Of a DNA stretch of 64,000 nucleotides, positions 1,165 to 37,089 are shown one piece after another. The stretch lies in NCBI GenBank assembly GCA_964036045.1, contig OZ038378.1:97588001-97652000 (forward strand), given 5' to 3'. The translations under genes and the position numbers were made by a program. Under the pieces are notes generated by a model, which saw only the letters and a list, made by a program, of their open reading frames with translations, was not told the origin of the DNA and searched no databases. The DNA comes from Eutreptiella sp. 'Long Island Sound 2002'. Its lineage: Eukaryota > Protista > Euglenida. Every line of letters starts with the position of its first letter. Position 1 is the stretch's first letter.

Positions 1165-1185
1165 CTTAGCCGGCTCTTGAGGTCA
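1165..1185 (+). repeat. Left TIR of element A
   Basis: CTTAGCCGGCTCTTGAGGTCA, preceded by TSD CCTAAA. Confidence 0.92.
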
Positions 1186-1496
1186 CGGGCATAGCACTCC
1201 CGGGGCGCATGGGACCACCGTTTTAAAATGCTGTTTTTCAACCCCAAATTGGGAGATGTTGGTGAATGACATTTTTACCGGTGATTCCAACAACCTCTTT
1301 TTGTAGGTTATGTGCCTTTTCTTTGCATACTCGGACTTGAAAATGAGCCACCTACAAAAGACGAAACAAACAGTTTTTTGATGAGGTGTATGTACGTCAC
1401 ACATGAAACATACACAGCAACATTGACAGTTTCTGGGGGTACTTTTTTAGATAGACACAAACACCAATGCTTCTGATAGGAATGCATTACATGGTA

Positions 1497-4400
1497 TCAG
1501 CAGTGTAAATTGCAATACTGCAATGATGGACCTCCAAAGGCCGGATTCAAAATGTGATGAAAGCAGACAGCACTTCTCGTGCGAACAGGCACCGTAGCAG
1601 GCCCAAAAAAGTACAAGTTGCAAAATTTGCGCCCTGCAGAGCGCAAAAAAATCGAAACCATATAAAATCCACGCATCAAAAAGGGCTCAGAGAATTCATT
1701 TCTTGCCCTTCTTCGCTGGTGGCTTCGCCTGCTGGGCTTTTGCGGCCAGAGCATCCATGGCAGAAGTGGCATCGGGTGTTTGAGGGGTGTTCGGTGTTTT
1801 TTTTTCTTTGGGGGACGAGGAGTGCCATCTGAGGTCTTGCGCTTACTGCCCACTGGAGCATCAGCAGGTGCATCCAGGGCATCGACCTGCTCAATTTCAT
1901 CCTCAGACCTCTCCTCCTCTGGGGCCTGTACCTTGGCTACCTCACACAAACACCCCTCATCGATGCAGTGGAACAACTCCCGCCAGTCCACAATATAAAA
2001 ACAGTCCATTTGTGTTATGGTGGTCCCTAGCTGGCTCATGAACTCAGGCTTGTCAGCATACTTGCCTGTGTATGGAACCACAACAGAGGTTGATTCCGTC
2101 AGGCATCTGAAGAGGTGACAGGGCATCATAACATTAGAGGTGACTGCCAGAATCCAAGCAGATTCCTCAGGAGCTCGTGTATCGGTGGGCACAACCCTCA
2201 GAGCCTTCAGAAACCAACCAATAACAGGGAGTGACAGGGATGCCTTGTACTCGCCTTGATCATATCAAAAAAAGCTGGGTACCTTTATGCCTAACTTATG
2301 GGGGATTCCAAAATGCACTGTTCTCTGCACCATCCGCATAGTAGGATTGCCAGTAGTCTTATTGTACGTAGTAGTTGAGAGCCATTGGCAGCCATCACAG
2401 CTATCCAGCCCACACAATTGGTCGAGCAAGAACTTGAGTGCCTTGCCAGAACCCACAACGGCTATGGGGACCTCCTTGCCCAGTACCATGTCCAATAAGG
2501 GATGAACCTCACCCATTTACTCATCCTCAAGCTCCACAAGGATCTGCATGGGTACATAGGGATACTAGGAGTGGGTGGGGCAGTGCTGGGGGGGGGGGGG
2601 GCACACAGGCAACAGGCCCCCGGGGGGGGGGGGGGGGGTCAAACTGAATTCGGACATCGAGACATCCAGACAAAGAATTGTGCTATGGCAGTGCATACCG
2701 CAGCAAAAGGCGGGTATGCGGCGCCAGCAGGCAGGCCCCTGGTACCACCTAACGAGAAGATCCTCATTTCTCCCATAGCGTCATTCGCGTTGCCACCCTC
2801 AGTCGTCTGCAAAAGTGATGGTGATGCACCCATCTCCTTCAACGTCAATATTGCCAGTTTCTCTCCACTGTTGTCCACCTTTGGTATCACCGGCGGCTTT
2901 GACATAGCCAGTTGGAAGGGACGCCACTCCTCACTTGCCCAGAGCTTGCATTCCTCCACAAAAGACCAAGGAGGATACTCAGAATTTGCTGACCGGACCC
3001 AGTTGACAAAATTCAACTTAATTGCTGTATTTCTGGTCACCAGCTTCCGTACCAGTCAGTTGCTCTAGATTTCCTGGGAGGGCGCATGAATAAATCCACA
3101 CAAGGTGTTCGAATGACATTTCGGTAGCAATGCGCTCTGCGGAGCGCAAACGGATGCACAGGTCGAAATTTAATGTCGCATTTGGTGGTACAGGAAATTT
3201 TACGCTCTGCGGAGCGCAAATTAATGCACAGATCGGAATTTAACGGCTGATTTGGTGGTACAGGAAGTTTTACGCTCTGCAAAGCACAATACGACGGCAC
3301 TGTTGCTTTACGGGCCAGATTTGAGAGCACGCATACTTCGAGTTTCGTGGATCATGGTATTCTCTGGATGGAGGTACACGTACTCCCAGATGCGGTCATC
3401 CTTCAGTCTCCGGCATAATTTGTTGAACCCATGTAACGTTGCCTTGTCCGATGCCCAGTAATCGATGATCACCTGGCAGTGGTCCGCATCCAGGCCCAAT
3501 GCAGGTCGAAGGGTGGTACAGGTAATCCTTGCAGGCGGTAACAATGGTATACAGGACTGTTGGTGACGTGTTCTGTGACCCTAGGACACATCGAGCGGCA
3601 GGACATTACCTTCCTTGCAGACTCTCGCAACATTCTTCAGCCCAACCTCGCATCTGTTCTCGGTTGCTACCACCAGGCGCTGTCGGGGTCTCTAGACTTT
3701 CCACAGGTTCTCCTGACACCCAAAACCGAAGGAGGTTTACGTAGTAGTTGAGAGCCATTGGCAGCCATCACAGCTATCCAGCCCACACAATTGGTCGAGC
3801 AAGAACTTGAGTGCCTTGCCAGAACCCACAACGGCTATGGGGACCTCCTTGCCCAGTACCATGTCCAATAAGGGATGAACCTCACCCATTTACTCATCCT
3901 CAAGCTCCACAAGGATCTGCATGGGTACATAGGGATACTAGGAGTGGGTGGGGCAGTGCTGGGGGGGGGGGGGGCACACAGGCAACAGGCCCCCGGGGGG
4001 GGGGGTCAAACTGAATTCGGACATCGAGACATCCAGACAAAGAATTGTGCTATGGCAGTGCATACCGCAGCAAAAGGCGGGTATGCGGCGCCAGCAGGCA
4101 GGCCCCTGGTACCACCTAACGAGAAGATCCTCATTTCTCCCATAGCGTCATTCGCGTTGCCACCCTCAGTCGTCTGCAAAAGTGATGGTGATGCACCCAT
4201 CTCCTTCAACGTCAATATTGCCAGTTTCTCTCCACTGTTGTCCACCTTTGGTATCACCGGCGGCTTTGACATAGCCAGTTGGAAGGGACGCCACTCCTCA
4301 CTTGCCCAGAGCTTGCATTCCTCCACAAAAGACCAAGGAGGATACTCAGAATTTGCTGACCGGACCCAGTTGACAAAATTCAACTTAATTGCTGTATTTC

Positions 4401-6183
4401 TGGTCACCAGCTTCCGTACCAGTCAGTTGCTCTAGATTTCCTGGGAGGGCGCATGAATAAATCCACACAAGGTGTTCGAATGACATTTCGGTAGCAATGC
4501 GCTCTGCGGAGCGCAAACGGATGCACAGGTCGAAATTTAATGTCGCATTTGGTGGTACAGGAAATTTTACGCTCTGCGGAGCGCAAATTAATGCACAGAT
4601 CGGAATTTAACGGCTGATTTGGTGGTACAGGAAGTTTTACGCTCTGCAAAGCACAATACGACGGCACTGTTGCTTTACGGGCCAGATTTGAGAGCACGCA
4701 TACTTCGAGTTTCGTGGATCATGGTATTCTCTGGATGGAGGTACACGTACTCCCAGATGCGGTCATCCTTCAGTCTCCGGCATAATTTGTTGAACCCATG
4801 TAACGTTGCCTTGTCCGATGCCCAGTAATCGATGATCACCTGGCAGTGGTCCGCATCCAGGCCCAATGCAGGTCGAAGGGTGGTACAGGTAATCCTTGCA
4901 GGCGGTAACAATGGTATACAGGACTGTTGGTGACGTGTTCTGTGACCCTAGGACACATCGAGCGGCAGGACATTACCTTCCTTGCAGACTCTCGCAACAT
5001 TCTTCAGCCCAACCTCGCATCTGTTCTCGGTTGCTACCACCAGGCGCTGTCGGGGTCTCTAGACTTTCCACAGGTTCTCCTGACACCCAAAACCGAAGGA
5101 GGTTTCCAAAAATGCGCTCTGCACGGCGCAACGGGTATGAGACGTCAATAACTACCTTCATATTTAGGACACATGCAAGCAGAAGCGCTCTACAGAGCGC
5201 AAATTCACCAAACGCCACTATTTTAATGGGGACAGGCAATGAACCGGTTTCTCGGGTCCACGGAGCTGGCCAGCCTTTCGTAGCGCAGCCATCAGGGCTA
5301 GTTTTTCGTCTTGCTTCCACTCCTCACTTTCGTACTCCCACCAAATTGTATTGCCCACTTGGTACAGCTCCATGCCGGCCACGAACCACTGTTGCGCATT
5401 TGAGTCCCCAGTGACCTTTTCTCTGATGCTGAGCGGTGTGTCTGTCCTGCCAAATCTGCCACCACATAACCCATCCAGGTTGGGATCTCCTTTCGTTTCG
5501 CACATAACTCCTTCCACCATTCGTACGCCGCGGCAATCAGGTGTTGGAAGGCGATGACGTAAAAGATATTTGCTGCAGAGGACATAGGGGTACATGTGGC
5601 AATATTAAAATGAGGAATGACAGCACAGGAGCGCCCTGCAGAGCGCAACGAGACAAACACACTTATTATTGATACTGAAAATGGAGCAGACACATCAAGC
5701 TGCAGTCCCTGTGTACATTGCACCTAAAGATCGCCGGACGATGCACTCCAAATGCCTGTGAGGTGGATGCTGCTTGAAACTGGCCACCCGTGCCGCCACG
5801 AGTTGAGGATCCCTCTTGCGCACTTGCCGATACTCGCAATTGAGATCCTAGCGCAGTTTCTGGAAAGGGATCTTGAAGTGCTTTGGTTCCACCCACTCCG
5901 TGAGGCTGTTCTTCACCATTGCCTTTTCCATACTATCAATGTTCCGGGCCTTCGTTGCAGGATCGTCCTGAGAAGCATTCTTGGAGGGTGTCAAATAGGC
6001 CTCCAGGGCTTGTCTGAGATTTTTTGAGGTCTCATCTCCAGGAAGTGGCAACTCAGTCTCTGAAGGCTCCTCCATGTTGCGTAAAATGCAATGCCAAAAA
6101 GGGAGAAAACGCAAGAAAACAGGTGCATTGAAATCAGAAATGGGCAGAAATCTAAATTTACTGCTCACAATCGGATTCTTCAA
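1497..6183 (-). pseudogene. Second large ORF (ORF2) of element A, function unknown, disrupted and partly duplicated
   Basis: Fragments 5848-6183, 5218-5595, 4675-4911/3308-3544, 4006-4407/2639-3040, 2265-2516 and 1497-2192 are collinear with homologous blocks in ORF2 of element B. Confidence 0.65.
2365..5104. repeat. Near-perfect tandem duplication of about 1.37 kb (2365-3737 / 3738-5104)
   Basis: Identical ORF translations in both copies; the only differences I saw are G-run lengths (6 nt). Confidence 0.95.
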
Positions 6184-6199
6184 GAAGAAAAGACAAATC

Positions 6200-8327
6200 C
6201 TCTTCTAAACATGTGAATTCTTCAACCACATCACCATCTCAGCTAGACACAGTGATTATACTACGTTGGTCCACCATTTCCTCACAGTCATCACCGTTAT
6301 ACTCTTTTTGCACTTCGTCCTCACCATCTCGTACACCCACCAGGCCAACTTGGGGGCCAGGTGGTGCAGGAGGGGCTGGGGGGGGGGGGGGTGGACGCTG
6401 GCGGTATCATTGTGGGAGGGGGTTCCGTCTAAAGATGTGGTCCCTTTCCGCCATGGCCGCGGCGATTTCACGATGAGTATACCGTGGACACAATGAATTA
6501 AGCACATCTACAGTTTCATTGTCCACATCCACAGCACCTGCACGTGTGTGTAATGTTTTCACCAGAAAATCTTGCAGCCGTCGGGTTGAAAAGGGATCCC
6601 GCAGTTATCCCGGGAAAGCCATGGACTGCGGTTAGGTACCCACCACCTTCACCTGAGGAGCAGACGACCATTCCATAGGATGGGGGATACGGTCCGTATC
6701 CCGCACAAACATTGAAAGGTGCATCCGAATGGCATCTACAACGCGCTGCTGAAGCCTGCTGTTCTGCAAATCCTTTTTACCCCTTGTAGCCAGGGCCACT
6801 AGCAGGAAAGGGTCAATGGCCCCCTCGAGTTTGCAGGAGGTGGATGAGAATTGCCGCAACTTCTCAACAAATCGAGAGAGCATGGCCTCACAAGGTTCCT
6901 CGCTGTGCATACTGGGGCGGGGGGGGTTGTACCATACCATAGGACCCACAACAGTTTTGCTACTGCTAAGGTTCTGAGATATTCGTGTGAACCCTCAGAA
7001 CCATCAAACAATCGCAACACAGCCAACATACACATATTCAACAACAATTGTGCTGGGTGAGGCACTTGAACTCTACGCCCCGTAGACCAGTTGCAATCAC
7101 GGACCACCATACCCAAAATAAACAAATTGGGGACGTAATCATTCAACAAGTTGAAGATTGCCTCTGTTTGTTGCAAACGCTGTTGTTGCAGTACCGACCT
7201 ACTGCCAACTCGAGCGCTCTGTAGAACGCAAAGATTTTGTTTCAACTGTTGCAAGTACTGGGGGGCAACGAGTAACAGACTCATGAACAGCCTTTCCTTC
7301 CAAATGAGCTTGGAGTGTGTGTAAACATCCGGTTCAGGACTTTGTGGACCAGATGACAAAAAGCTACATAGAGAGAAGAATGTGCGATACACTGCTTCGC
7401 AGCAGTACTTGTACGCATGCCAGACACCATACACCATAGGACAGTAACGGAGAACATTATGAACCTTGTAGACGTCATATGTACTAGAGTACAACATTTT
7501 TGCCACACTGTAAAAAATCTTCATATCGATCAACATAGGCAGAACCCGGTTGGACTTCTGTTGCGGACTGACCACAAACTTCAAAATTCGAGCTAGATCA
7601 CACTGGGTGCCAGTAAGCAGTGGGGAAAGTAGAAGGGGTTTCCACTGCAAACTCTCAACCCCTTTGCGTTTCACATCTAAGGGGCACCTTACATCTGCCA
7701 TAGTGTAAGGGAGGCGTTTAGTGCATTGTCCAAGTTAGCAAGCAAAGTGTTATGACTTTGAACAACTGATGTCGCTATGTCCCCTATTTTGGAAAACAAA
7801 CTACCCAGTTGAGGGTATCCTAGAAAAACATCCAGTTCACGTTGCAGCGGCAGAATTGCAAATACAGAACATTTCAACGATGCCTTGGCACCAAATGGGG
7901 TGGGTAAGCAATGTTTCCTGTAGCAGTTGTCATACCACAAAAAACAAGGGGAACTGAAAAGCTCGTCTAGACGCTGAGCAGCAACATTGGAGGCCTGCCG
8001 TGATAAACTCGGGGCACTCTACAGACATAAACCAGTATAGGATAATTTACGGCGTGCTGCACGAGACATGGGAACGTCAGCCTCAACAGAACTACGCTTG
8101 GTACAGGGTTTCCATTGCTTATGCAATAACAAATAAAGATTGTATGACACCTTGCACAATTGATTAAACCAAGGCAAACCTTTACCCGTTACCTTCATAG
8201 TTGTCAACATCTGTTGAATGTCTCCGAAAGTTCGGTAATCACCTTGATCAGCCCTCAGTGCCATAAAAAATGCAAAGAACTGCAGGGCATAACCACCATG
8301 GGAATAAGCATGCTGCATTATATCCAC
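6200..8327 (-). pseudogene. Putative DDE-type transposase of element A (frameshifted), unclassified, Academ/DUF6589-like pattern
   Basis: ORF pieces 8019-8327, 7689-7940, 6799-7701 and 6632-6949 share ordered blocks with copy B: WYDN, PLDVKRKGVESLQWKPLLLS, LPMLIDMKIFY, YGVWHAYK, HSEEPCEAML, then a Pro-rich and acidic tail. It lies inside TIRs. The catalytic D-D-(H)-E reading is inference. Confidence 0.7.
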
Positions 8328-9365
8328 ACCTGAAATGTATTCTCGCTCCTACAAGAAGGCGCGGAACAGTGAGGCATCAATGGCACGAACAAGCCCGAAA
8401 AGAAACTAAATGAAGGGATACTGGTCAAGTAACGTTGCAGGGATACATGCCACGTTAAATCGATGAACAACAAGTAAATTTGTGCTACCAAAACAAGGAC
8501 AGTCAAAAACTTTGCGCTCTGCAGAGCGCAAACAATGCAGAACAACCAAAAACAGGGATCACCAGTGAGCATATCACGCTAAATGTGCTCTGCAGAGCGC
8601 TCCAGTCGGCAAAATAAGAAAAAACACCAATTGTCATGCGTTGTAAGCATTTGCGCTCTGCAGAGCGGAACACGGGCAACTGGTCAAGAATGGCTGTACT
8701 ATTCTGTGGCACAGAACATTGAATCATACTAACAAATGGGGGAACCACAAATACATGTCACAAAATGCGAATGTACCATACCTTGTCACCTTATAGGTCC
8801 TGGTGTCCCCTCCAGCCATGTACTGTCCCACACGACTGTCCAAAACCCAATGACGATCCATACATAACTTGACCAACCAACAAAATGTACTCCAAAATAG
8901 TACTTCGGCCAGATTTGCGCTCTCCAGAGTGCATGGAATAGGAATTGAAGGAGATGACGGGCTGATTTGTGGAGACAGGGTTTGGAGCGCTCTGCAGAGC
9001 GCAACAGGCCAGATTTGCATTAAAAAATCAAGTAACGTATGTTTGTGGATTGCTCGTAGGTGCGGCTTAACAATGGTTGTTCAGGCAACGGAGCGCTCTG
9101 CAGATCGCAAACACTTATAGTTGTTGAAAATCATGGCCTGAAGTGGACAGTTGGGCTTCCTTGCCCTCTGCAGAGCGCAACAGACTCGAGGTCCTTGAAA
9201 TTGGCGTTTGTTTTTGATGTTCCACACAGCGGACCTGTAAAGGGCTCAAGAAGCAATGTAACGAAAAGGGGTGTGAAACGTGCAAAGATGAAACCTCCAA
9301 TTTCCATCATGAAAACAGACACTTTCCAATTGCCCATTTTGGGTCTCATGCAGTGCCCGGAGTGC

Positions 9366-9386
9366 TGACCTAAAGAGCCGGCTAAG
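9366..9386 (-). repeat. Right TIR of element A
   Basis: TGACCTAAAGAGCCGGCTAAG, followed by TSD CCTAAA. Confidence 0.92.
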
Positions 9387-9542
9387 CCTAAAAGGGTTCA
9401 GCTAGGCTTCCACGATTTGATACACGGTAAGGCTTATGTCAGCCTTGGGATCAACTGCATGTCCGAAATGTATGTGCGAACGTTCGGAATGAATTGAAAG
9501 TACATGTTTTTGTGCATTCTTGTCATCCTAAATGTATGGGGA

Positions 9543-10618
9543 TTGAGAATTTGCTATTCAAAGTACGGGTTTGTGAGCCACCATAGCACCTAGATACCAC
9601 TGGGGGACATCTGTGGCTGTATGAGACTTTGAACCACTGGGACTTTGCGATTCAAAGTACGGGGGTCTGGGCCACCAGAGCACCTAGATACCATTGGGGA
9701 ACATCCCTGACTGAATGAGACTTTGAACCATGGCGAATATGCAATTCAAACTACGAGTTTCTGAGCCACTAGTGCACCTAGATACCGCTAGGGGACATCC
9801 CTGACTGTATGAGACTTTGAACCATTCGAAATTGGCGACTCATAGTACGGGTTTCTGGGCCACCAGAGCACCCAGATACCACTGGGGGACATCCCTAATT
9901 GTATGAGACTTTGAAACATTGGGGCTTTGCGATTCAAAGTACGGGTTTCTGAGCCACCAGAGCACCCAGATACCACTGGGGGACATCGCTGACTGTATTA
10001 GACTTTGAAACATTGGGAATTTGCGATTCAAAGTACGGGTTGGTAGGCCACCATAACACCCAGATATCACTGGGAAACATCCTTGACTGTATCAGACTTT
10101 GAACCATTGGGAAGTTGCGATTCAAAGTACGGGTTTCTGGGCCACCATAGCACCTAGATACCAATGGGGGACACCCTTGGCTGTATGAGAATTTTAACCA
10201 TTGGGAATTCGGGATTCAAAGTACGGGTTTCGGAGCCACCATAGCACCCAGATACCAGTGGCGGAGCTCCCTGACTATATTACACTTTGAACCATTGGGA
10301 TTTTGCGATTCAAAGTGCGGGTTTCTGAGCTACCGGTGCACCTACAAATCAATGGGTGACATCCCTGACTGCATGAGACTTTGAACCATTGGGATAGTGC
10401 GATTCGAAGTACGGGTTATGGAGCCACCAGAGCACCCACATACCACTAGGGGACATCCCTGACTGTATGAGACTTTGAACCATTGGGCATTTGCGATTCA
10501 AAGTACGGGTTTCGGAGCCGGCAGAGCACCCAAATACCACTGGGGGACACCCCTGATTGTATGAGACTTTGAACAATTGGGAATTTGCGATTCAAAGTAC
10601 GGGTTTTTCGAGCCACCA
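9543..10618. repeat. 94-bp tandem satellite, about 11.5 units
   Basis: The CAAAGTACGGG anchor recurs every 94 nt from 9559 to 10593, and whole units are similar along their length. Confidence 0.95.
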
Positions 10619-10711
10619 AAACAGCATGTACCATTCTGTGTACTAACATGTCCGAGCGTCCCACATTTTATATGGGTGATTTTGTGTACCAAGTGAAGAC
10701 GATTATAAGTA

Positions 10712-12180
10712 GTGAGTCGGCCTTCTTCGCCATCGTGTACACAGTGCCATGATCGCAACGGGCACACCCACAGGCCATCTCGGTTCCAAAGGAATTTTTG
10801 GCAACCCGTGGGTCATCTTGAGGAGGCGACCATTGAGTTCGATTCTTGGAGCCGGAAGATGTACAAGGTGCCCAAGGGACCTCGCTACGGGCGAGAAAAG
10901 ACGCAGAAGGTCAACAGAATTGCCCTCAAGGTGCGAAGGGGACTGGGGTTGTCCCGTGGCCAGTTGCACGTTCTGCACCGGCTATGCCCCAGCCTACACT
11001 GCAACGCCACGCAGCTTGCAAGGGAAGAAGAAATAACACTCCCCGTTTTCAACAGAGACATCACAAGCTCACGGCTCCTTGCACATGTCTGCTTTTTTCT
11101 GCCCCGGTTGCCATGAAAAAAAAAAATGCAACCGTGCCAACAGCCATCCACCCCTTTGTCACCGTTTATTTTCGCCGATGGTGTGTTCCCATGGGCTCGG
11201 GGGAATGTAAATTTGCAAGTAGCCGTCATGGACTGTGTGGGCAGTCTCATCCCCCACATGGACACCGGTGTACCTTGTAGCACCATGCTCGTGACGTGGC
11301 GGGAAATGTCCAAGAAGGCATCTAATACATGGCGCATGGAGAGACGCATAGAAGAACCGATCCTCCATCAGAAAAATAAATTTCCAATCTCACAGATCAG
11401 TGCCGTGCTAACCCCTGATTTCATGTGTGGTGACCACCATTATATTTGGTCCGAGACCCGCACCAACCGGTGTTCAGTGTGTGACTAGTCTCCGACGGAT
11501 CACATGCAAAAGCTCTTTTGGGGTACACACACCCCACCACCAATCCCGCTTTCCGTCTAGGTGCCGTTGACAATGTCGAGAACATGCAATTTGTGCAGCC
11601 CGTGCTGCACAATTTGAAGGGCACAGGGTCCCGCCTTTTTGGTATATGTGGGTGTGGTATGCATGGCACCCAGCAATTTGCATTCCTTGCTGTGCTCTCA
11701 AAGGTGGCAAAGCATTGTGTTGTGTCTCACACTACACAGCAAGCAGCTACAGTGACCAGCAACGCTTTGTTATCTGTACTGAGTCTCACAAGGTGTGAGT
11801 CGCGTGAGCTGTGGGCCAAGGTTGTTTTAGGCATGATTTTGCATCTGCCTTTCTACTGGGCTACCTTGTCACTATGCCTTGTGGCAGTGCTGCTTTATGC
11901 CAGTGACCTGGAATTGCCTACTGTTAAATGGAGAGCAACCGGTGCCCTACACACTTTTTTTACCACTGCTAGTCATGAAGTTGGCGGAGGGCGGGAGTAC
12001 AAGAACATTGTATCGCCATTCTTTGTTGCACACATGGGGTTTGCCCACATTGTCAGTATGCACTAGCGATGAGGCAGGGGAGAGCAACATCCATCTCAGC
12101 AAACGCTTTGCCCGGGTGACCTCAACAGTCCCGGACGACGGCATTCAGAAATGCTTGACTCATTAATTATACATGAAGCT
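10712..12180 (+). pseudogene. CxC + KDZ (Kyakuja-Dileera-Zisupton)-like transposase relic
   Basis: Ordered motifs across frames: FIFADGVFPW (CxC-type G.FP), RCSVCD*SPTDHMQKL, LFGICGCGMHG (G...C.HG), FVAHMGFAH (FH.yaH-like) and DEAGESNIHLSKRFARVTST (GE..E). Family assignment is from remembered motifs. Confidence 0.6.
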
Positions 12181-12846: not shown

Positions 12847-14820
12847 ATGTCTGCCTCTCCCTTCGCTTGGGATTGGATGGCGGCCGTCACAGGCCCCGCC
12901 GGTACACGTGGCTGCTCCCTTCCGGAGGGGCAGACCTTCCACGACACTGCCATCCCAACCAACTCCGCCGTGACTTGGCCGCCGGGCACAACCATTGGCC
13001 CGGTGCGCATCACCAAGCCCATCCTCCGCGAGAGGGCCCCCTGTGCCCTCTAAGACCTCATTGCGGAGATAGTGCGCCGCAACCCCGACATCACCGCTTT
13101 CCACGTGCGGCCCAGCGGAGCGGACTACTCCTCCTTGCTGGAGTCCCTGTCCACCCACCTGCCCAGCGACCACGCCCGGATCCACAGCCAGCACATGGCT
13201 GCCAACCCTGTGGATGCCGAGCCGCCCATCACCCTCCGGTTCGCTTCCACGAAGCCAAGGCCTGCCACTTTCACCAAGGAGCGGTGGTACAAAGAGACAG
13301 CCAAGACGAAGCTGTTCCTCTTCGATCCGCGGCAGTCCGGTGAGGAGACCCTCCCCTTCTACTGTTCACGGCAGTGGGGCAGTCACTCGGCAGCTCCAAC
13401 ACGGGGTCGGGTGCGCGACAAAGAGCGGGCTGGAGGTGACGGGGAGGGCAAGCAGCCTGCTGGCCGCATAGGCACTCGGCACGGTGAGTCCGGGGCCGTC
13501 AACGGGGTTTTTTTGCGGAGTATGAGGTGGAGGAGGCGCACACAGAGGCATTGGCGATCACCGAGGAGCACTAGGTCCGCATCTTCAACCACAACTGCCC
13601 AGTTCCTGACCGAGCTCAGGACCCGCCGCACCGCAAGATGGTGTGGGAGAAGCTGGAGGACATGTCCAAGCCTCCAGATGGGGAGGAACACATCCAACTG
13701 TGGGACCTGCTGCCCCTGACGGCCATGATGACGCCGGTGAAGGCCAAGATGGAGGCGATCTAGGGCAAGACGCTGCATGTCATGACGCAAGGGTAAATCG
13801 AGTCCATCACCCACATTCGACAACTGCCGCACCGAGATTTCCCAGCAGTGTCACTTCCTGTGGATGGCATTGCCCTCTCCCTGGCTTGGGCAATGTCGAT
13901 GGATATCCGTGACGATGATGTTTGCGCACAGTTTGTCGCCATATCTGCCCGTGCCTTCCCTCAGCCTTAGAGCATCCACCGCATGCCAAGGAGAAGGGGT
14001 TCCCTGTGGGTGATCTGCGCGACGGTGGTGCATGAAGGAGGCGGCCTGCCATGGCTGCGGAACCGGGGTCTCGCTGTATCATTGCGTGTTGTGGGCTGTC
14101 TACGCATACTGTGTCCTACGCCACCACCCACGCCATCACGCCCCTGTTTTGGGCACACAAGGCCGCTGTGAGTTGTGGAGTGCTCAGATGCCGCCGGAAG
14201 CCGACAAGTGAGAAGTGTTTGGGTGTGGAGTGCAAGTCCTTTGCCGCAATCACACGGGGATCAAGTGCAGCAAGTGCGACACCGAAGCAGCAGTAGCAAC
14301 AACATCCGATCCACGGAGTGCCAAGGCCGCTGATCGGAGTCGTGTCCCTTCCCTTCAGCACATGGTGACCTGTTTGATTCCATTGGATGGGACGACAATT
14401 TACACCGGGCATTGCGAGGCAGGGGCCGCACCACATGTGTTTCCCGATGACACAACCCCCAAGCCGGAGGACTGCCCACTGGCGGAGCATGCAGAAGAGA
14501 GTGAGCGGCTGCCCTGGCCGAGATTGGAACACCGCGCCTTGTTGGTTACGCCGCCTGGGAGCATTCTGGTGGTGGTGAACGGCCGCTTCGGAGGATTCAC
14601 CCAGGGTACCAGGGTTACAGAGCAGAGCAGTGACGTTTTGGTGTACCGGATGGAGATGGCACCACCCCGGCCCAGACCCGTGGACCCGAGCTTGTTGATG
14701 GCGGCCGGGGCGATTGTTTGCAACACCAAGGTGGCACACGAGCAGGCCTTTTGGTGCGCATGCCAGCATGTTGACACTGGGTGCCCTTTGAATCGGAGGG
14801 CCTTTGGTGGGAGGGGTTGA
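12847..14820 (+). pseudogene. Decayed ORF with a Cys/His-rich (PHD/Zn-finger-like) segment, function unknown
   Basis: ATG at 12847. Fragments 12817-13053, 13072-13719, 14051-14296 and 14215-14820, the last two containing CIIACCGLSTH and CGVQVLCRNHTGIKCSKCD. Multiple stops and frameshifts. Confidence 0.45.
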
Positions 14821-17905: not shown

Positions 17906-20187
17906 CGGTTGGGAGCCTTGCCCCGTTGGGTGTCTCTTTCCCCGTTCCCCGGCAGGTGGTGCCCTTTGCCCTTCCCTTTGCCCCGTGCGTCCTTCTGCCG
18001 CCCACCCTTACCGTGGCGCCGCTCTCCTTCGCGCCCGCGTCCATGTCCCTACCCCTTCCCTTGTCCTTTTCCCCGCTTCTCGCCGTCCGTTACCTTCCTT
18101 CCCTTGCCACTCCTTGTTCCGTGGTGTTGCTCCCCTTTCGCTGCCCCGTCCGTCCCCTTTCCCTTTCCCGCTGGATCGCGGTCCTTGCGCCCCCCCCCCT
18201 TGCCCCCCCCCCCCCCCCCCCCCCCCGGCCCTGCTTGGACCTGCTGCCGCTGGTCGACTTGCCGCTGCATTTGGGGCGGCGTGATGGTTGCTCCCTTGGC
18301 GTGTGGGAGGGGAGGGCTGTGGCCGCCTGTGGCGCCCGTCGGGGAAACGGGCTTGTGGTGCTGGGGCGCTGCCCCACTTGCCGCCAACGGCACTGCTGCG
18401 GCCACCTGCGACTGCAGCCGGGGGCGCCGTCGCAGCCGGCGACGTCAGCTGCACCTGCCGAATACGGCTTCCGGGGGCACAGCAGGGTGTGGTCTCGCTA
18501 CACGTTGGAGCGGTACTTGTCCTGCTCGTTACCAGCCACCGGCGCCCCTGCAGCGCGGCCACCCTCCCCGCTTGCATCCCCCCGCGCCTCCCCCGGTGGC
18601 GTGCTCGGGCTCTGCGCGGTCACGGCGGCCTGCTCTGGTGGCCCGCGCGGGGAGGCGGGGGCCGTGGCCGCGGGGGTGGCCTCGGCCGGCGCCTGCTCCG
18701 GAACTTGCACCACAGCTGGGTGCGCGACTGGGGCGGCGGCCTTTGCCAGGCGTCGTTCCTCCCACTCTGCGGGAGTTTCCCCCTCGGGCGCCGGGGAGAC
18801 GCAAGAGCGGGAGCGCGAGCGGCCGTGGAAGCGGTCGTCCCGGTGGGTGAAGCCGTTGCAGTCCAACATCTTTAGCGGCAGTGAAGCTGTCAAGCACATT
18901 CAGTGTGGCTGACGCGTGTCGCCAAGCCGCGTGCCCTTTGTTACCCGTCCCGCCTCCCTGGTGTGTCGGTGCGTGCTGCAGGTGGTGCGGTGCGGTAGTG
19001 GGGGTAAATGGGTAGGTGTGGCCGCGGCTTTGGAGGGATGACGAGCCGGTTGCAACCCATCAACATTGGTGCGGGAGGTGCGTGAACCACTCGGCCCACT
19101 ACGTACCACAGAGGTCCCACCCGGGGGCAAGGTCTAGGACCATGGGGCCACATGGGTCCTGCAAGGTCTTCGAGGGAAGCGGCACGAGGTGGAGTCCGGC
19201 TACTGCGGTGACGCTCTAGCTCCGCTAAAAGGCCGGCCCGGAGGGGGGGCGGGCCGTAGAGGTGAGGAGGGGTGGCTCCCAAAACGCGCTGCGAGCCCCC
19301 GCGCGTCGCGACGACAAGCAGGAGCAGGAGGCAGCCTCGGTGCTCCTGCCAGAGGGTTTGGCCCCTATCGTGGGCTCTCCTCTTTCTGGAAACGGGGGTG
19401 GACAGGAGCGGGTGGGCCCAGCTGCGGGGCATGTCGGTGGGCAGTGGGGGGTTTGGTTGCGGCGCGGGTTCACGGGGGAAGGCGTCACACACAAACGAGT
19501 ACGGGGGGGTGCGTCTCATCCCGTCCATACCAGGTTTGAGGTTTGAGGTTTGAGGTTTCGGGTACTGAACGCGTTTCGGGTCCGGGGAGCCCCCTGGTCG
19601 GGCCACGTGAAATGCTCCCCACCGGGGCCTAGTGGGGTGCCCTTTGGGAGAAACCTCCCGCCAGGTGGCGGAGATCCCGGGTTCACGGGGCTCGGAGCCT
19701 TGTCCCTCCCCGACTTCCCCATTTTGCCACTGCCCGGTCAGTGTGTCGTTTAGCAACTAGGTTGCAGGCGCTTACCCACTACGTCGCCCCCCTATTGCAT
19801 GGTCGCCCGGGGTGCCGGCGATGTTGGGCCCGTGGTACTGGCTTGTCCCCAGTGGGACCCCCATGGGCTGGCGCGGAGGCTGCCTAGCCGCGGGGCTGGT
19901 GCGTGGCGCAGCGCGCCACTACTGCCTTGGCGGGTGTAGTGCCCTGTTTGTTTCTGCACAGCGCTGGCGGCAGGTCATGGGAGGCAGGGCCGGTGCTTCT
20001 CGTCTCCCTCTCCCCCCCCTCGCCGTCCCTCCCTTATGGCGGGTTGCCCCGTCCGGGTGCCCCTTCTCCTCGCCTGCTAGTACACCATTACAGTTGGTAT
20101 GTGCGTTCCGCGAGCTCGGTCCGGTTGCCCTTTTGGTGCGCGCCGCGTGTCCGTTGTGTGTTCGTGCACTCGCGCTCCCGCAGTGTT
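17905..20187 (-). mobile_element. GC-rich retroelement-derived repeat (decayed RT N-terminus plus Pro/Ala- and Lys/Gly-rich ORF), left part
   Basis: 19520->17905 is homologous to 39390->40790. The minus-strand translation PGMDG..PYSF..DMPRSWAHPLLS..LLLLLVVATR..PPHLYG resembles non-LTR RT regions 0-2. Confidence 0.5.
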
Positions 20188-20490
20188 CTTAGGAGGCCTT
20201 AATTGCCCGGGGGGTGGGGTGGGGGGTCTGCAAAATGAAAGCCATTCATGGGGTGAAAAAAAATGGTGAATTACTACCCCCTAATTGCACACAGCGCACA
20301 ATGTATGAAGTTTTGAACTGCAATCATGCCCCATATTGTCCACTTGGACCATTTTGCCTGCAATTGTGGACACTAGCAAACCATCCAAAACAGGCATTCA
20401 AATTCAAAGAAGTAGCACTCAAGGACAAATTGCATTGTCCACTGAACGGTTCCTGTTGTGTACAGATGACACTCTGTGAAGCAGTACACT

Positions 20491-20663
20491 GATGTATGGT
20501 GAAACAGACCCCCATTTTCAGGGTATTTCATTGAGACGCGAAATTTCGACACATTTGGCAAAATGCAGTATAATGAGATGTATGGTGAAACAGACCCGCA
20601 TTTTCAGGGTATTTCATTGAGACGCGAAATTTCGACACATTTGGCAAAATGCAGTATAATGAG
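20491..20663. repeat. 86-bp tandem duplication, each unit carrying the element-B palindrome
   Basis: gatgtatggtgaaacagac...gcgaaatttcgac...gtataatgag starts at 20491 and again at 20577. Confidence 0.9.
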
Positions 20664-20959
20664 GTATGAAATAATGTCAGTGCATTGCCTGCATGCCACG
20701 GAACAAGATTGATTCACAATATCGCGGACATACGATTCGAACCATAAGGAACTCTTAAGAATCAATCAATACACAAACATACGTCATAGAAATTACCAAA
20801 TGTTGCCTACAAAAGGCAATTGCCTGTGCCAACACCCACAAAGGTTGTGTCAGAATAGGAAATCAAATAAAATCGGACACAAATTAGAATTCAAAATGAC
20901 TGCTCAGAGGATGGTGGTTCTGCAGTCACCATCCTCTCATCATAGCAGTCAAAACCAAA

Positions 20960-23505
20960 TCACCGTCGTCGTTTGTTCCCGAAATGTGTTCCTTTTTGAG
21001 GTTGTTGTTGTGGCTGGGCTGCTGGTGCAGTCCCACCACTCACCAAATTCGCAAAGTTCTCCAATCCCTCTGGTGACGGTGACTGTCCTTTCGGCTCAAA
21101 CAGTGGATGTGTATTGCCTTTGTGTGGCGTGACCAACTGCTGAATCTGCTGCTGTGTCTGCTCCTCGTCATCTTGCGTCGCTGGAGCCTCAACAGAGGGT
21201 GATTGAGCACTTTTCGTAGGCGTTGCTTGGGGCTTGGCACTACCACCTGCATTGACACTAGGGCGATTGCTGGCCGTCCCCTTCTTGAGGTTTGGCTTAG
21301 ATGCCTTCGGCTTTGGGGTTCCCTTGGGCTTGGCATCCACGTCGAGCATACTATCCATGCAGTCCTGTTCATCAGGGTCGTCAGGTACATAAGCCATTCC
21401 AGTCCTGTCGACAGGCATACTCTTGTGCACTTGTGGCAACACAAACTCCCAGTAGATTGCAGCCAGAGGGTCAGCCTCTCTTAAAATACCAGTTGTGAGC
21501 TCAACAATTTCTTTAGGTAGTTCATCAACCGAGGATACCAAATACAACCGAAATATCCGACTTCAGACGGATGTGAAGCTAAATAGCCAGATTTGGAGAG
21601 CAAGACCCAACTAGCACCCAATTTGTAAGATTCATTGCCACTTTCATAACCTCTAGCACCCATTGAACAGCCTGAGGACACAGGATACTGGATAATGTGG
21701 CTTCACTGAACGTGACGTACATCGGCAGCTAAATACATGGTTCAAATTGCGCAAAATGGCGGGAGTGGCGAAATTTCGCTTGATGGTGAGATTTTGTTGC
21801 TTTGAGGGATCAATTCACAGGGGGCAATGTACCTTCCTTGGAATTGGAGTCAACGTGACAATTGTCATCACTGATTGCATCGGAGTGAAATTCGGATTGC
21901 GGCTGCCAGTGTTGTACACCATGACACTCACATGATTCACTCCCTCCTCAGCTAGGTCAGTATGCAGCTAGCTCATGATGATTCAAACATCCGCCAATTC
22001 ACCAGCAACCACCGGTGGTCTCCCCATTGAAACATGTCGCACAGCAAGAGGTGGTAGACCCATGGACCAGCCGTTTGGAACCTCAATGACAGCCAGTATC
22101 AAGGGCAACCCAACGACAATAGCATTTAAAATGGTAGTAGGATTCACAAGCAAAAGTTGAAAGGGGGACTCACCGCCAGTAGCATCTGCCCCACAACTAG
22201 AAATTGTCTTCAAGTGAACCACATTCCCTTCGGAGCTAGCAATGTCAAAGGAATACTGAGGTCTGGCCAGGTGCCTCCTAAAGTCTACATATTTTGAGGA
22301 TGTCAAGAATTCGGCCATGCACACAGAGTGCCATGGAGGTAAAGGCATGTCATCAGTGTACACCCAGTCTGCACAGCGGAACTTCCATGCACCAATCCCC
22401 TTGATATGACGATGTAGGGTAGCAATCTCGGATGTATTTCCTAATATAGAGAAAAACTAGGTGCCCAAACCAGCTGAGAGGCGACATTTCGCCACTATCA
22501 GCAGAATTCGATGATTTCATAGTGCAATTCAGGATGCCTGCACAACATACTGCGGGATGGGTAAACCAGCTCCTCTCGACAGTCAAGATGCATAACAATC
22601 CATCCCCATCGCATTTCTCGTTGGTATTCACGTGCCACTTTAGCCAGTCCTGCAACAGTAGCTCGTGGAGTCTCCATGTATCTGGCACACTGTGACAGGT
22701 ATGGTCCAATGAGCCCCTCCAATGGTTTGAATGATCCAAATGCCAAGGGGATCCTCTTGCTCTCGAAATTGCGTATTCCATCGACTGCTTTATAGCCAAT
22801 TGCCTCAATCATTCTAGCCAAGGGTAGCCAGCGTTGTGCCACACAACCCTACAGTGTATACAACCAAATTTTTCGGGCCCAGGATAGTAATGCGCATCCG
22901 AGCAACAGTCACACACCACGCTTCCTTCATCAGCTATCAGTCCAGCCTCCTCCAACATCTGGCGGCACACGTCGGTGAGACTGAGATCAGCATTCTCAGG
23001 CTCCTCCAAGTTGTCCACCAGCAGCACTGCCCTCTCACTCATGCATGCTGCTGTGCGTGACAGTTGTGCTATCTGCTGGTGGCCGGCCAGGTGTCTCCTC
23101 TGGCGCAAGGGAGTAACCCATCTCAGAACCATACACTCAAACTGCAGTTGCCATCTCAAAGGGTCAAGATTCTTTTTGTCACGTTCACTAGCCAGTCTCC
23201 TTGCTGCACAAAAGACATGCTGAACACCACTGATCCAGAAGCTACCCACTGACGCAATAACGGAAGAAAATTCGTCCACAGGCCCGCACACAAACGACAG
23301 ACGCGTAGGTGCACGTGCAGCAACATACAGCTGTCAGTAATCCCTTGATGATCCCCACGGGAGGTACCCTTGCCAAATCCTCCACCCGCAGCGTCAGTCT
23401 GGTCTTGCTGACCTTCCAAATTTGAGCATGCTCGCGGTTGACATCCACCCGCAGGACGTTGTGGGATAACACCACTGTCTTCTGGACGGCATCTGCTAGA
23501 GTCAT
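20960..23505 (-). pseudogene. ORF2 of element B, function unknown, includes a PHD-like Cys/His cluster
   Basis: Fragments 23242-23505, 22809-23291 (VCDCCSDAHYYPGPEKFGCIHCRVVWH), 22498-22842, 21983-22363 and 20960-21547 are collinear with ORF2 of element A. Confidence 0.65.
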
Positions 23506-24324
23506 TGTTTTCGGGGTGGCCTTCTTGTTCCCCCGGCTGTGCGGACTCCGTTGACCGGGGCCCTCGGGGGACCCTGCGAGGGTTGCGATAAAGAGGGTGG
23601 CTCTAGGGCCACAGGCACATTGGTGTTTGATTTTGGGGGTACAGATGACATGACAGTGGGGGCCTGGAAGAAATCAGGGTGCTCTGGGCATGGATCACAT
23701 TGACAGGCAGTGGTGATTTGGTTGTTTCCGGACGAGTTGTTCCTGAATTATAGCCTTTGCAAGGGAAATTCCCGTAATGCTGCAGAGAGTAGCTACAATC
23801 ACACATCATGACAGTCGGAGCAAAATGTAATACGTAAAATCATGAGAGTCGGGATCGCACACAAAAATGAATAGCACATTAGTGGTACGAGTGGCAGCAG
23901 TGTAACAGTACCCTGTCGGACACAGGCTCAAAACACACAAAGCCAAAAAGCAAGCGAAATTTCGCGTCCAAAACCAAAATATGCTAAAAGCACTATTGAA
24001 AACACCAAATATCTCAAATGTGGCGAAATTTCGCCACTCCATGCAAAAACACCACAATCCAGGGACAGTATTCGGTACATTGTGAGGACAACAGGTATGT
24101 CGGTCCCATTGTGAAGTATCCTGTCCAAAAACCTCCTCGTCATCCGGATTAACTATTATGTCGTCATCATCCGAAACAGGACTGTCATAACTGTTACTGT
24201 GGACTGCAAACAATGCCACCTCGGGGCCATCGTCCTCGTCATTGCTCGCATTGTCCGCACCTGCCCCCCCCCCCCCCCCCAATTCGGATGCTGCACCCTA
24301 TTCTGCGGTACTGGTTGATATGGG

Positions 24325-27144
24325 CTAGGTTTGGCTGGTGGTTTTGGATTCCTTGGGGCACGTTTGGCGGTGGTTGCACCGTGGATGGGGGGGAGGGGGG
24401 GGGCGGGGGTGAGGGGCACCTAGTTTTGCAACGGGTTTCCCTGGTTTGGCTTTTGGTTTGGGTTTGGGCTTTGGCGGGCGGGTAATTTGCATCACTCTCT
24501 GGATATCCACATTCTGTTGCCGTGCAATCGTTGATGGAGGCACTGTTTGTTGTAGAACCGTAAGAAGGTCATCGCTTGGAGGGTTCTTATGAAGAAGGGT
24601 CCTGATATATTTGTGGAAGACACTGAAAAGAACGCTACGTGGTGGAACGGCTGCAAATGCAGTAGAAAACCGAAGGTCATCTACACTACGCAACACAACG
24701 GCTTTTACTCCCCGAAGGGGTGGCGGCTTCCATTGTACAATGGGCAAGGATGCAACAGACACACTCATAATAAATTTTCTCAGATGGGACCCATACCACT
24801 TGACACACTTCTCTGTCAGTGAGAACCGCACGTTCTTCCTCCTTGTCAGGGTCTTACTCGGCGTTACAAAAATTTGCGAGGTGCCGCTCAGGAATGTGAT
24901 GGTAGTCCATATCCGGCATCGTGCACACAACTTGCACAACCTAATCAACATAGCCTCCCCATATTCCTCACTGTGAATACAACCGGCCGTTCGAGAGTGC
25001 CAACACTGCCATGTGACCAGAGCAGTCACAAATGTCTTGATGTACTCCACATTCTCCCATTGACCCCCCACCAAAGAAAGCATAACCAACAAACAAGACT
25101 CCGGCACTGCCAAGGCATTCTTCCCACTTCCGGGATCTCTACCAGCCCAATTGCCGTCTCTCACAACGACACCAATCCTAAATGCAGCAAGGCATTACTC
25201 CTTCAACAACAGCTTCAACCCCAAAAGTAGCTCCTTGCTTTTAGACTGCATGTCCGTCGATGGTCCATTCTGCGCTACAACGGCAAGCGCATCAAGTTAT
25301 GCCTGAACTCTTGGGAGGTAAGTGCCAGCATTCAGATAACGCGCCAATATTGTGTTCTCCATATGAAGGAGCTTAACCTTGTTTGGTACTGCATCGCCTT
25401 CCTTCAAATCGGTGTGTGCTCTCTCGATCAGACAGATAATGGGCATAAAGTTGCGGTAAAGCATGGTGATCATATGCTTGTACGGGTGCCAAACCCCGTA
25501 GATGAGGGGGAGGCTCGACTAGTGGAATCGGAAGTTCCATGAAGTGTAACTCTGCCCATACAGGTATTTCAAGAGGTCACAGTGAATCTTCATATCCACA
25601 CACAGTGGTAAATCATGACGAGTTGCCAGCTGCACATGCCGCATTGTAGTAAGCAGTTTCAAGGGATCCAGTCTGGTTCCACACTGTAGTTGAGACACCA
25701 TCATTGGTTGCCAACGGAGAGAGCCTGCTGCACATGCCGGATTGTAGTTAGCAGTTTCAAGTGATTCAGTTTGGTGCCACACCGTACTTGAGACAGCATC
25801 ATTTTTTTTATCCAATAGGCCAGTTCATAATGTGCCAAGGGCAACTGTGGGCCAAGTTCGATGCAGAGTATAGATTTCGGCATAGCCAGGGTGTGCATAC
25901 GGGCTGCAGCTCACGCCTGCGCCCCCATGGCTTCCCGTTGGCGTGGTAGTGGTCATGTCATTGGTATTTCCCACTCGTTTGGATCCCAGTGCGTTTGGTG
26001 GCGTTTCGGTAGAGGATGCATCGGGACTTCCGACCAGGGTGGGGTCCCAATGTTCTCGTGGCCGTTTCCGTATGAGGTATATCGTCTATCGTGCTTGTCA
26101 GGTTGTTTGCCGGTATTGTGTCGTCTTATGTTTGCAGGCGTCATGGTAGCACTCTGTCATGTTTGCCAAGTGTTTCTGCTGGCACCACATGTAGTGTGCC
26201 TATCGTAGGTGAAGGTCCAGCGGCTTATCGGTGCCAGCGCACATCCTTTGGTATCGCCCGCAGATCAGCAGCAGCATTTTTGCATCCGCATACCACATCC
26301 TTGTGTCGTACGTTGCTTGTTTATACCATTGCCTGCGTATTTGGCACATGTGTGCATGTGTGTTGTGCTGTCGTTGTGCCGTCGTTGAGACAGCATCATT
26401 GGTTGCCAGCGGAGAGATAGCACATTTTGCCGCACAATGTCCAGGAGGACTCTGACAAAGGTATGCTCAATCATGTCAGGAAGAGCACAAACCTGCCGAA
26501 GCAGATCCGCATGACGAAGTTGTAAAGCATCAACACGTGCCCCAATTGTCTAAACGGCACCAATTAGTGAGACATGACCCGGATCGAGATGGTGGTAGGG
26601 CTGGCAAATGTAACATGGCCACAACTGTGCAATTTATGGAGTGGTCAAGATGCAGCGGGTCCAACCCATAATTCTTTTTCACCCAGTTGTCATACCACAC
26701 CGCCATCTGGTGGTTCTGCATGCTTTGCCAAAGCCATGTTGCTTGTTGTCGCGCATTGGCAGTAAGTGAGGGAATAGCTGCATGCATAAGTCCTGTGGGA
26801 GCCAACCATCGGCGGGTCCTCCGGCTCAATGAAATAGGTATTGGCACATCCTGGCACTGTGCATCAGGAGCTACCATCTTTCTCAGAAGTTGCAACAAGC
26901 ATCGCAATGGATTTGAGAAAACAGTGTACCAATGGGGCTTCTTCCGTATTCCATGGGCAAACAACAACCGTGTAAAGTCCTTCCGTGATCGTCGATGTGT
27001 CCGCATTGCCAGGGCCCAGACAGCCAATAACCTTGCGGACCCCCCATTGGCAACATCCGTCATGAGGTCATCAACGGTCCGAAACTCACGATTTGCCACA
27101 ACCACCATAAGCAGTGCCGGATCCATGTCCTGTGGTGACCTCAA
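24325..27144 (-). pseudogene. Putative DDE-type transposase of element B, interrupted by a LINE fragment
   Basis: VWYDNWVKK (26530-27144), LLDIVRQNVLSLRWQPMMLS (26265-26474), LPLCVDMKIH (25519-25815), LIYGVWHPYKH (about 25510-25475) and HSEEYGEAML (24325-25164) occur in the same order as in element A. There is also an internal ~98-bp tandem duplication at 25629-25803. Confidence 0.72.
25804..26384 (-). mobile_element. 5'-truncated non-LTR retrotransposon 3' end
   Basis: TSD TTGAGACAGCATCATT at 25788-25803 and 26385-26400; T-run (minus-strand polyA) at 25802-25809. RKRPREHWDPTL/HWDPNEWEIP is homologous to the 3' end of the LINE at 48514-51199. Confidence 0.9.
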
Positions 27145-27604
27145 TCGAAATACTCACTATTTGCCTCAGAACAGGGAATATACTGCATGTCAAGATTGTC
27201 GGAATGTTCATAAAATTCATCAAAGGCACAAGTTTGGGGACAAATGAAATCAAATTAGCACACAAATATACAAATACACAATAAGGGCATCAAAACATCA
27301 AATAATGAAGGAGTGGCGTAATTTCGCGTCTCATGAGTGAAAAAATACATGAAAAAAGGGTGTGATATCGGCCAATTTCAAGGAGTGGCGAAATTTCGCT
27401 TCATTTTGGCAATTTGGCTGATTTGGGGGTTGAAATTGGAATTGGGACATTGGTATGGTTCAAAAAATGGCTTTTAAAACATAAATTGAAATAGTGACCG
27501 CCCCCCCTTGCATTTCATACCCTAAAAAATCACCCCGTTTCGGGGTAACAAATTCCACTTCTTGAGGGTCACCATGGGGGGCAATTAAGGCCTCCTAAGG
27601 TGTT

Positions 27605-37054: not shown

Positions 37055-37089
<35 letters not shown>

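Follow-up and report, generated by a model that had tools for sequence, protein, structure and literature searches.

Two DNA transposon copies, which we call A and B, lie on a 64,000-nucleotide stretch of the genome of the euglenid Eutreptiella sp. 'Long Island Sound 2002' (GenBank assembly GCA_964036045.1, contig OZ038378.1, positions 97,588,001 to 97,652,000 of the forward strand), referred to here as the window. They are probably decayed insertions of distant lineages of one cut-and-paste family, characterized by terminal inverted repeats (TIRs) of ~21 bp, target-site duplications (TSDs) of 5-6 bp, a transposase with an RNase H fold, an intron-bearing second gene (open reading frame 2, ORF2) whose product has a ParB/Srx fold, and palindromes private to each lineage. 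The transposase family is real, large and unnamed, and combines a P/hAT-like fold with a ParB-like partner. The following features were identified (positions are those of the window; HMM, hidden Markov model).

1165-9386, minus strand: element A, 8222 bp, dead copy, delimited by a TIR (20/21) and exact 6-bp flanks
1159-1164 (left) and 9387-9392 (right): TSD of A, CCTAAA, exact 6-bp match
6428-8342, minus strand: remnant of the A transposase gene, from the family HMM mapped onto six-frame pieces
1500-6183, minus strand: multi-exon remnant of the A ORF2, placed by a relaxed profile search
2365-5105: tandem duplication in the A ORF2, 1374 bp, 99.6% identical
1631-9176: copies of the A palindrome, all 15 inside A and none in the transposase coding remnant
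20188-27599, minus strand: element B, 7412 bp, dead copy, delimited by a TIR (21/21) and exact 5-bp flanks
20183-20187 (left) and 27600-27604 (right): TSD of B, GTGTT, exact over 5 bp
24400-27111, minus strand: remnant of the B transposase gene in five pieces, from the family profile on the six-frame translation
25718-26378: insert of ~660 bp in the B transposase gene, lacking in the sister copies at loci L014 and L015
20960-23481, minus strand: remnant of the B ORF2 (exons given below)
20538-27399: copies of the B palindrome, all 8 inside B

Two dead copies and their relatives

The left TIR of A is CTTAGCCGGCTCTTGAGGTCA (1165-1185), and the right end at 9366-9386 differs from its reverse complement at one position. 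In B, CTTAGGAGGCCTTAATTGCCC (20188-20208) pairs with 27579-27599 at all 21 positions. An earlier note on this DNA, made from the sequence alone, had described 21-bp TIRs sharing CTTAG..GGC and exact flanking duplications in both elements, and these were confirmed. A 5-bp duplication is possible for A only if the left boundary is shifted out by one base. When all CTTAG/CTAAG pairs in the window were scanned, TIR and TSD occurred together only in A and B, and four of the five window sites with the pattern CTTAGNNGGC are the ends of these elements. For the other CTTAG...CTAAG pairs (34637-35191 and 52040-55442), the TIRs are weak and a TSD is lacking, as expected by chance. A lone CTTAGAGGGC at 13045-13054 was also considered as an element end and was rejected, as it has no partner in the window. 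The G+C content is ~50% in the elements vs ~69% directly before and after B.

Both copies carry the transposase gene and then ORF2 in minus-strand order, as the note had stated, and all of the peptide blocks that it quoted as aligning between A and B were found in minus-strand ORFs. In tblastn comparisons of pieces of A with B, the transposase core is 30% identical over 246 amino acids (aa) (E 4e-25), and weaker ORF2 matches occur further downstream. This identity and the matching gene order bear out the proposal that one two-gene TIR transposon family includes both A and B, as divergent members. A six-frame search of the window with the family profile found no third copy of the transposase.

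Neither the transposase nor the ORF2 protein can be made from either copy. The transposase remnant of A contains an in-frame TAG (8019-8021), and its reading frame shifts near 7704-7716 and again in a C-run near 6916-6928; near 6601-6659, a stop is accompanied by a further change of frame. In the A ORF2, the ParB-like exon 1 (~5698-5880) has a TAG at 5848-5850 in place of a Trp codon that is conserved in relatives, and exon 2 (~5439-5582) encodes AFQH in place of GGQH; later exons lie at 4678-4947, 4009-4422 and 1500-2264. The transposase gene of B is found at 26584-27111, 26376-26516, 25528-25722, 25303-25515 and 24400-25188, and there are stops and frameshifts in B besides the ~660-bp insert. 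The B ORF2 encodes AQIW in the ParB-like exon 1 (23332-23481) and GVQH in exon 2 (22992-23258), where sister copies have GQIR and GGQH; exon 3 spans 22501-22848 and further exons extend to ~20960. Thus, ORF2 is too broken or degraded in both window copies to yield a protein, and from the stops, the frameshifts, the insert in B and the tandem duplication in A we conclude that both elements are dead. The 1374-bp duplication is far younger than the remaining damage to A. The insert in B includes a short flanking duplication and a 98-bp tandem repeat.

Copies of the B family that are 81-86% identical to B were found in two other loci (L014 and L015). At L014, both ends are present and the TSD is an exact 5 bp, AAAAC; nested in this copy is a 6.4-kb element (L014 412-6800) with a reverse transcriptase (Pfam RVT_1). 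A partial copy of the A family, 88-91% identical, is present in another assembly (L001), where the left end is kept and the element is truncated. A 255-bp segment of this locus (L001 9483-9737) is inverted relative to A (window 7941-8195), and the orientation in A is the coding one.

More distant relatives provide further ends. A complete element of 6.5 kb is present at L009. Its transposase ORF runs uninterrupted for 762 aa, its 23-bp TIR is perfect (ATCTATGGCGGCC...), and its flanks match at 4 of 5 positions. L008 has TIR-like arms with CTTGGTWGGC and no clear duplication. Among L008, L009, A and B, CT[TA][ATG]G-NN-GGC thus recurs at or near the ends, and CTTAG itself is not universal.

The transposase family and its predicted fold

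A phmmer search of 1.84 billion representative proteins with the 311-residue core of the A transposase yielded 534 matches at E<=1e-3, so that the family has at least this many members; 261 of them reach E<=1e-10 and 30 reach E<=1e-30. Relatives of full length have 650-820 aa, and about 40 of the matches listed are 640-822 aa long. Thirty relatives were looked up; they derive from ENA, JGI and Logan assemblies and their annotation never goes beyond 'hypothetical protein'. No Pfam family was detected in the window pieces at E<=1 (DUF6589 included), in ten full-length relatives at E<=0.1, or in 56 aligned relatives at E<=1 (including the DUF6589, hAT, P, MULE, RAG1 and KDZ models). Nothing meaningful emerged from NCBIfam and Pfam scans of the window pieces, the 56 transposase relatives and ORF2 pieces from five loci. 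A family profile made from the 56 sequences matched no chain at E<=10 when searched against all PDB sequences, which include those of the Hermes, P element, RAG1 and Transib structures. A search for related loci with nine aligned sequences gave five short contigs only, none of them with element ends.

Conserved columns were read from the alignment of the 56 relatives and are numbered according to one of them, P0005. D283, W318, H319, E360 and R419 are invariant, and D149, E480, E481 and E484 are kept in at least 90% of the sequences. The near-invariant blocks are W147-x-D149-N150, R229-x-P231-x-D233-x-x-R236 and G316-x-W318-H319-x-Y321. The conserved motifs of the transposase are thus WxDN, LVDxxI, GxWH and CEAxLS, and H319 is the only Cys or His column to be conserved across the family alignment. 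Transposase identity between lineages is ~25-40%, and the gene is usually intron-free across the elements examined.

An AlphaFold2 model of P0005, built with the 56-sequence alignment, has a mean predicted local distance difference test score (pLDDT) of 85.3, with values >90 across most of residues 120-640. The model shows an RNase H fold into which an all-helical domain is inserted. D149 is on a strand (144-153), D283 follows the strand at 280-282, and the cluster of E residues opens a helix (481-496). In a structural search (VIA-align) of 48,161 PDB representatives, the top matches were all DDE transposases or integrases: the P element transposase (Z 9.9, 290 residues aligned), Hermes of the hAT superfamily (Z 8.5, 274 residues), Tn5 (Z 7.6, 181 residues), retroviral integrases (Z ~6.5, ~127-131 residues, spanning model residues 142-521), RAG1 (Z 6.1, 285 residues) and Transib (Z 5.6, 263 residues). 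The first ten rows of a Foldseek search consist of Hermes and P element chains only. These matches to the predicted structure point to P and hAT, not RAG/Transib, as the nearest solved relatives. No recognised DNA-binding fold was found at the N-terminus of the transposase in the structural search.

On the model, strand 1 would provide the first DDE position, the D of WxDN; the second would be the D of LVDxxI, which comes after strand 4, and the third an E of SEExCEAxLS, where the catalytic helix starts. This agrees with the earlier proposal that WYD(N), D(MKI), W-H-x-x-K and E form a DDE core, as these motifs include the top conserved columns and fall at the positions of the RNase H triad. 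An RNase H fold with conserved acidic residues, the lack of which the note had named as grounds for abandoning its reading, was found through the AlphaFold2 model and its structural matches.

ORF2 and the private palindromes

Genes for ORF2 were sought by profile search of six-frame pieces of contigs encoding full-length transposase relatives. ORF2 is beside the transposase in 10 of the 10 elements with enough flank (A, B, L002, L008-L013 and L014). In A, B, L002, L009, L011 and L012 it shares the strand of the transposase gene and is downstream of it; in L008, L010 and L013 it is upstream and on the other strand. Most elements have introns in ORF2. The N-terminal part has the consensus VPIxxLxWD...GQ[IV]R...PP..v.vW and continues, often after an intron, with [YF]xxLxGQHxxxA...RW...P...R..AG..Q.

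The N-terminal domain was modelled with AlphaFold2 from L008, using a 13-row alignment, and has pLDDT >90 over approximately residues 11-130. Foldseek matched this model to ParB, Noc, KorB and sulfiredoxin with a probability of 1.00 and E-values down to 5e-5. With VIA-align, the top 8 rows all have the ParB/Srx fold (Z 9.0-6.5): PadC (9.0), KorB (7.7), a serine kinase (7.5), the N-terminal domain of pNOB8 ParB (7.3), Atu1540 (7.3), sulfiredoxins (7.2 and 6.5) and SbnI (6.5); the next row has a Z of 4.1. Thus, as judged from the predicted structure, ORF2 begins with a ParB/Srx-fold domain, and GQxR and GQH occupy two loop positions of the fold. Pfam and NCBIfam scans found no enzyme domain in the rest of ORF2, including any methyltransferase signal.

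Further ORF2 sequences are available. An alignment used as a query retrieved 57 additional fragments, none of which (0/57) has a Pfam domain, and many are on megabase contigs. The three such contigs that were retrieved are all from a single ENA assembly. Several of the 57 fragments are sister copies of B, with GQIR and GGQH. Searches with single ORF2 sequences gave near-identical proteins only.

One explanation for this gene is that ORF2 is passenger cargo captured from a host and irrelevant to transposition. Its position and orientation vary among elements and its C-terminal part is poorly conserved, as might be expected of cargo. We consider this very unlikely, because ORF2 occurs in every element with enough flank, across lineages with such divergent transposases, and because the GQxR and GQH motifs are retained in intact copies.

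Each lineage also carries its own palindrome, a feature that the note does not mention. That of A has the core GCTCTGCAGAGC (one mismatch allowed) and the full form GCGCTCTGCAGAGCGC, with 15 copies in the window vs 0.13 expected; several are inside 70-bp repeats (3133-3280, 4500-4647 and 8516-8666). That of B has the core GCGAAATTTCGC, extending up to GTGGCGAAATTTCGCCAC, with 8 copies vs 0.10 expected. Other palindromes are TTCGCTCCATGGAGCGAA in L002, TGCGCGCCNNGGCGCGCA in L009 and TTCGTAACNGTTACGAA in L008. In total, five lineages have five different palindromes of 12-18 bp, and each palindrome is confined to its own element. The sites are mostly subterminal, intergenic or intronic, often within tandem repeats of 70-98 bp, and every ORF2 intron examined contains palindromes. 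In L014 and L015 the B palindromes occur at corresponding places, with none in the flanks or in the nested retroelement.

Some palindromes coincide with coding sequence. Copies in L009 (1235-1255 and 1852-1942) are inside the 762-codon transposase frame, and one copy in L002 is in the C-terminal tail, where it is translated as SLHGANI. Palindromes are therefore tolerated in coding sequence or read through as part of it. The B palindromes differ from those of L014 and L015 mostly by GCG to GTG or GCA changes, the pattern expected from decay of methylated CpG.

A possible mechanism can be outlined. The transposase would excise the element at its CTTAG ends and reinsert it at a target whose strands it cuts 5 bp (at times 6 bp) apart. 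The ParB-like ORF2 protein may recognise the palindromes of its own lineage, as ParB does parS, and, once bound, could mark, bridge or regulate its own element. We infer this recognition from the ParB/parS analogy, from the consistent pairing of the gene with palindromes, and from two reports on red- and brown-algal transposons that are described below.

Alternative explanations, placement and parallels

Several points weigh against this interpretation. The TSD is 6 bp in A vs 5 bp in B and L014. When the joined flanks of A and B were compared with the retrieved DNA, we found no empty site, no excision and no polymorphic insertion. Divergence within the families of A and B copies is ~10-19% and both window copies are dead, so that current activity is not evident. 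The DDE assignment is based on a predicted model and alignment ranges, without superposed coordinates, and both E481 and E484 are candidates for the catalytic E. Pfam and NCBIfam scans of ORF2 gave no ParB match by sequence profile, and no helix-turn-helix is demonstrable after the ParB-like domain, where the model has pLDDT of ~50-75. The palindromes are putative binding sites of the ParB-like protein by analogy, and this step of the argument is one of inference. In the B copies the palindromes are no better kept than other sequence (88% vs 84% conservation elsewhere), as expected if dead copies decay neutrally. What speaks for a function is instead the recurrence of palindromes across lineages, with a different sequence in each, and not conservation within a lineage.

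It is conceivable, if somewhat improbable, that the palindromes are not ORF2 sites at all. They could be repeats bound by the transposase, DNA or RNA hairpin signals (for example, tied to introns), or expanding mini-repeats, with ORF2 acting as an NTPase or nuclease in another role. The location of many palindromes within tandem repeats and in the ORF2 introns fits such a reading, as does the want of a demonstrable helix-turn-helix. Bacterial ParB sites, however, are palindromes of similar size, and the transposase N-terminus has no recognised DNA-binding fold. Proteins of the ParB/Srx fold do include NTPases and nucleases besides DNA binders (PMC10853773), but a ParB-like gene has independently been found with inverted-repeat arrays in Plavaka transposons (bioRxiv 10.1101/2025.02.11.637652). 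We therefore favor palindromes that serve as sites for the ParB-like protein.

Named superfamilies were considered in turn as a home for the family. P transposons usually have TSDs of 7-8 bp and hAT elements usually 8 bp (5-6 bp in some lineages), and the TSDs here are 5, 5 and 6 bp. For hAT there is no Pfam match, and Hermes was unmatched by the family profile at E<=10. For P there is no Pfam match and no THAP domain was detected; the fold alone is in common. Transib and RAG1 elements have a 5-bp TSD and heptamer-like CAC termini; here only the 5-bp TSD agrees, as the ends are CTTAG, there is no Pfam match, and the Z scores are below those of P, hAT, Tn5 and the integrases. At the motif site of the C/DxxH group (hAT, P, MuDR, Kolobok, plus Dada), this family has the invariant G316-x-W318-H319, in which the H is kept and the first position is G rather than C or D.

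Other superfamilies were set aside on the basis of published descriptions. Kolobok has a TTAA duplication and 5'-RR...YY-3' termini (PMC9587614), and the duplications here are CCTAAA, GTGTT and AAAAC, with C...G termini. Dada lacks TIRs, inserts in small-RNA genes and has zinc fingers of the CCCC and CCHC types (PMC3706591); our elements have 21-bp TIRs, an Rfam scan of the whole window found no family, and there is no conserved Cys pattern. The earlier note had seen a resemblance to Academ/DUF6589-type transposases, and this found no support, since there is no DUF6589 match at E<=1 in the window pieces or the 56 relatives and the nearest folds are those of the P element and Hermes. It was right that the termini, TSDs and partner gene do not fit Academ: AcademX has a 3-4 bp TSD and a nuclease, and AcademH a 9-10 bp TSD and a helicase (PMC10045372), as against 5-6 bp and a ParB-like partner. 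Academ is thus set apart by its description, not by sequence comparison. Novosib, Sola1-3 and Zator had no Pfam counterpart as of 2017 (PMC5751038), so that a blank Pfam scan may not exclude them.

It is likely, but not proven, that the family is outside every named superfamily. That the family is undescribed is plausible but unproven. The competing explanation is that the elements belong to a named superfamily that has gone unrecognised, either a very divergent branch of P or hAT, or Novosib, Academ, Sola or Zator. The ParB-like partner would then be the sole unusual feature. The best fold matches (P element and Hermes) and the Pfam gap for three of these superfamilies lend it some weight, and we regard it as a minority possibility: no Pfam model, including hAT, P, MULE, RAG1 and KDZ, is matched by any of the 56 members, the family profile finds none of the solved transposases in the PDB, the Kolobok, Dada and Academ descriptions all mismatch, and P and hAT duplications are usually longer.

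A more ambitious reading of the same data, which we put forward only tentatively, is that these elements are a new superfamily-level lineage, sister to P/hAT-type enzymes and marked by GxWH, CT[TA][ATG]G-NN-GGC ends and a 5-bp TSD. Each lineage might then possess a ParB/parS-like module for self-recognition, in which a nucleotide-dependent ParB-fold protein would load on private palindromes and thereby decide which DNA is moved or how the host treats it.

The likenesses to known systems are partial. The P element transposase (PDB 6p5a), the best structural match, has H-L-x-K after the second D, and the family here has H-x-x-K. The P element insertion is a GTP-binding domain, unlike the all-helical insertion of this family, which also has a ParB-like partner and no sequence or profile similarity to P. 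Hermes (PDB 8edg, 4d1q), the second-best fold match, shares an all-helical insertion, and the hAT catalytic-E motif S-E-R-x-F-S is similar to [SC]-E-x-x-[FL]-S here. Differences from hAT are GxWH for CxxH, the CTTAG termini, the presence of two genes and the TSD of 5-6 bp.

Accessory proteins with a ParB-like domain are encoded by two other algal transposons. In the red alga Bostrychia, the Plavaka protein PAG3 has an N-terminal ParB-like domain and is encoded beside tandem inverted-repeat arrays, and the authors propose that it binds its own transposon (bioRxiv 10.1101/2025.02.11.637652). Plavaka (EnSpm-related) thus resembles our elements in its ParB-like accessory protein with adjoining inverted repeats. 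It differs in having a transposase of another superfamily and a 2-oxoglutarate oxygenase domain in PAG3; no enzyme domain was identified in ORF2, and the elements here are also small (6.5-8 kb), with two genes only. Sola1-1_Ec32 of Ectocarpus, a 21.5-kb element, encodes a 1104-aa ParB-like/DNA-methyltransferase accessory protein, which is suggested to bind its own sequence and to modify it (PMC12477816). It too is a DDE transposon with a ParB-like accessory, and the differences are the element's size, its Sola1 type, and the length and methyltransferase domain of the accessory protein; no methyltransferase signal was found in ORF2.

The bacterial ParB-parS, Noc and KorB systems have the same N-domain fold and short palindromes repeated on the DNA that encodes them. 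Here, the setting is a eukaryotic transposon, and GQxR and GQH are present in place of the ParB boxes. In En/Spm, which encodes TnpA and TnpD, a separate DNA-binding accessory protein recognises repeated motifs of the element. PIF/Harbinger transposases have a Myb-like or MADF DNA-binding partner (bioRxiv 10.64898/2026.05.26.728016). The folds of both proteins differ from these two systems, and the palindromes here are distributed throughout the element, not just near its ends. A ParB-like accessory module is already known as an idea from the two algal reports; what is new is its pairing with this transposase family, in every lineage examined.

If the family is outside the ~20 named DDE superfamilies, it would add one more, with hundreds of sequences already public. 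The pattern of ParB-like proteins in red and brown algal transposons is extended to a third, unrelated transposase type. The constant pairing of a ParB-fold protein with private palindromes may offer a tractable case for how a eukaryotic transposon distinguishes itself from its relatives. Repeat annotation, whether of this genome or of related protist or metagenome data, will leave such elements unclassified as long as the family has no name.

Other repeats are present in the window. A 94-bp satellite (11.4 copies, ~82% matches) occupies 9542-10618, starting 150 bp past the right end of A. The G+C-rich DNA preceding B (18757-19525) has an inverted paralogue, 75-78% identical, ~20 kb away at 39399-40202. 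Three repeat pairs were identified in 35838-41365: 36114-36795 with 39051-38361 (87%, inverted), 36831-37446 with 38367-37750 (83%, inverted), and 35838-36112 with 41093-41365 (87%, direct). These pairs probably belong to another repeat family. Blocks of low G+C content occur at 32-38 kb and 48-64 kb.

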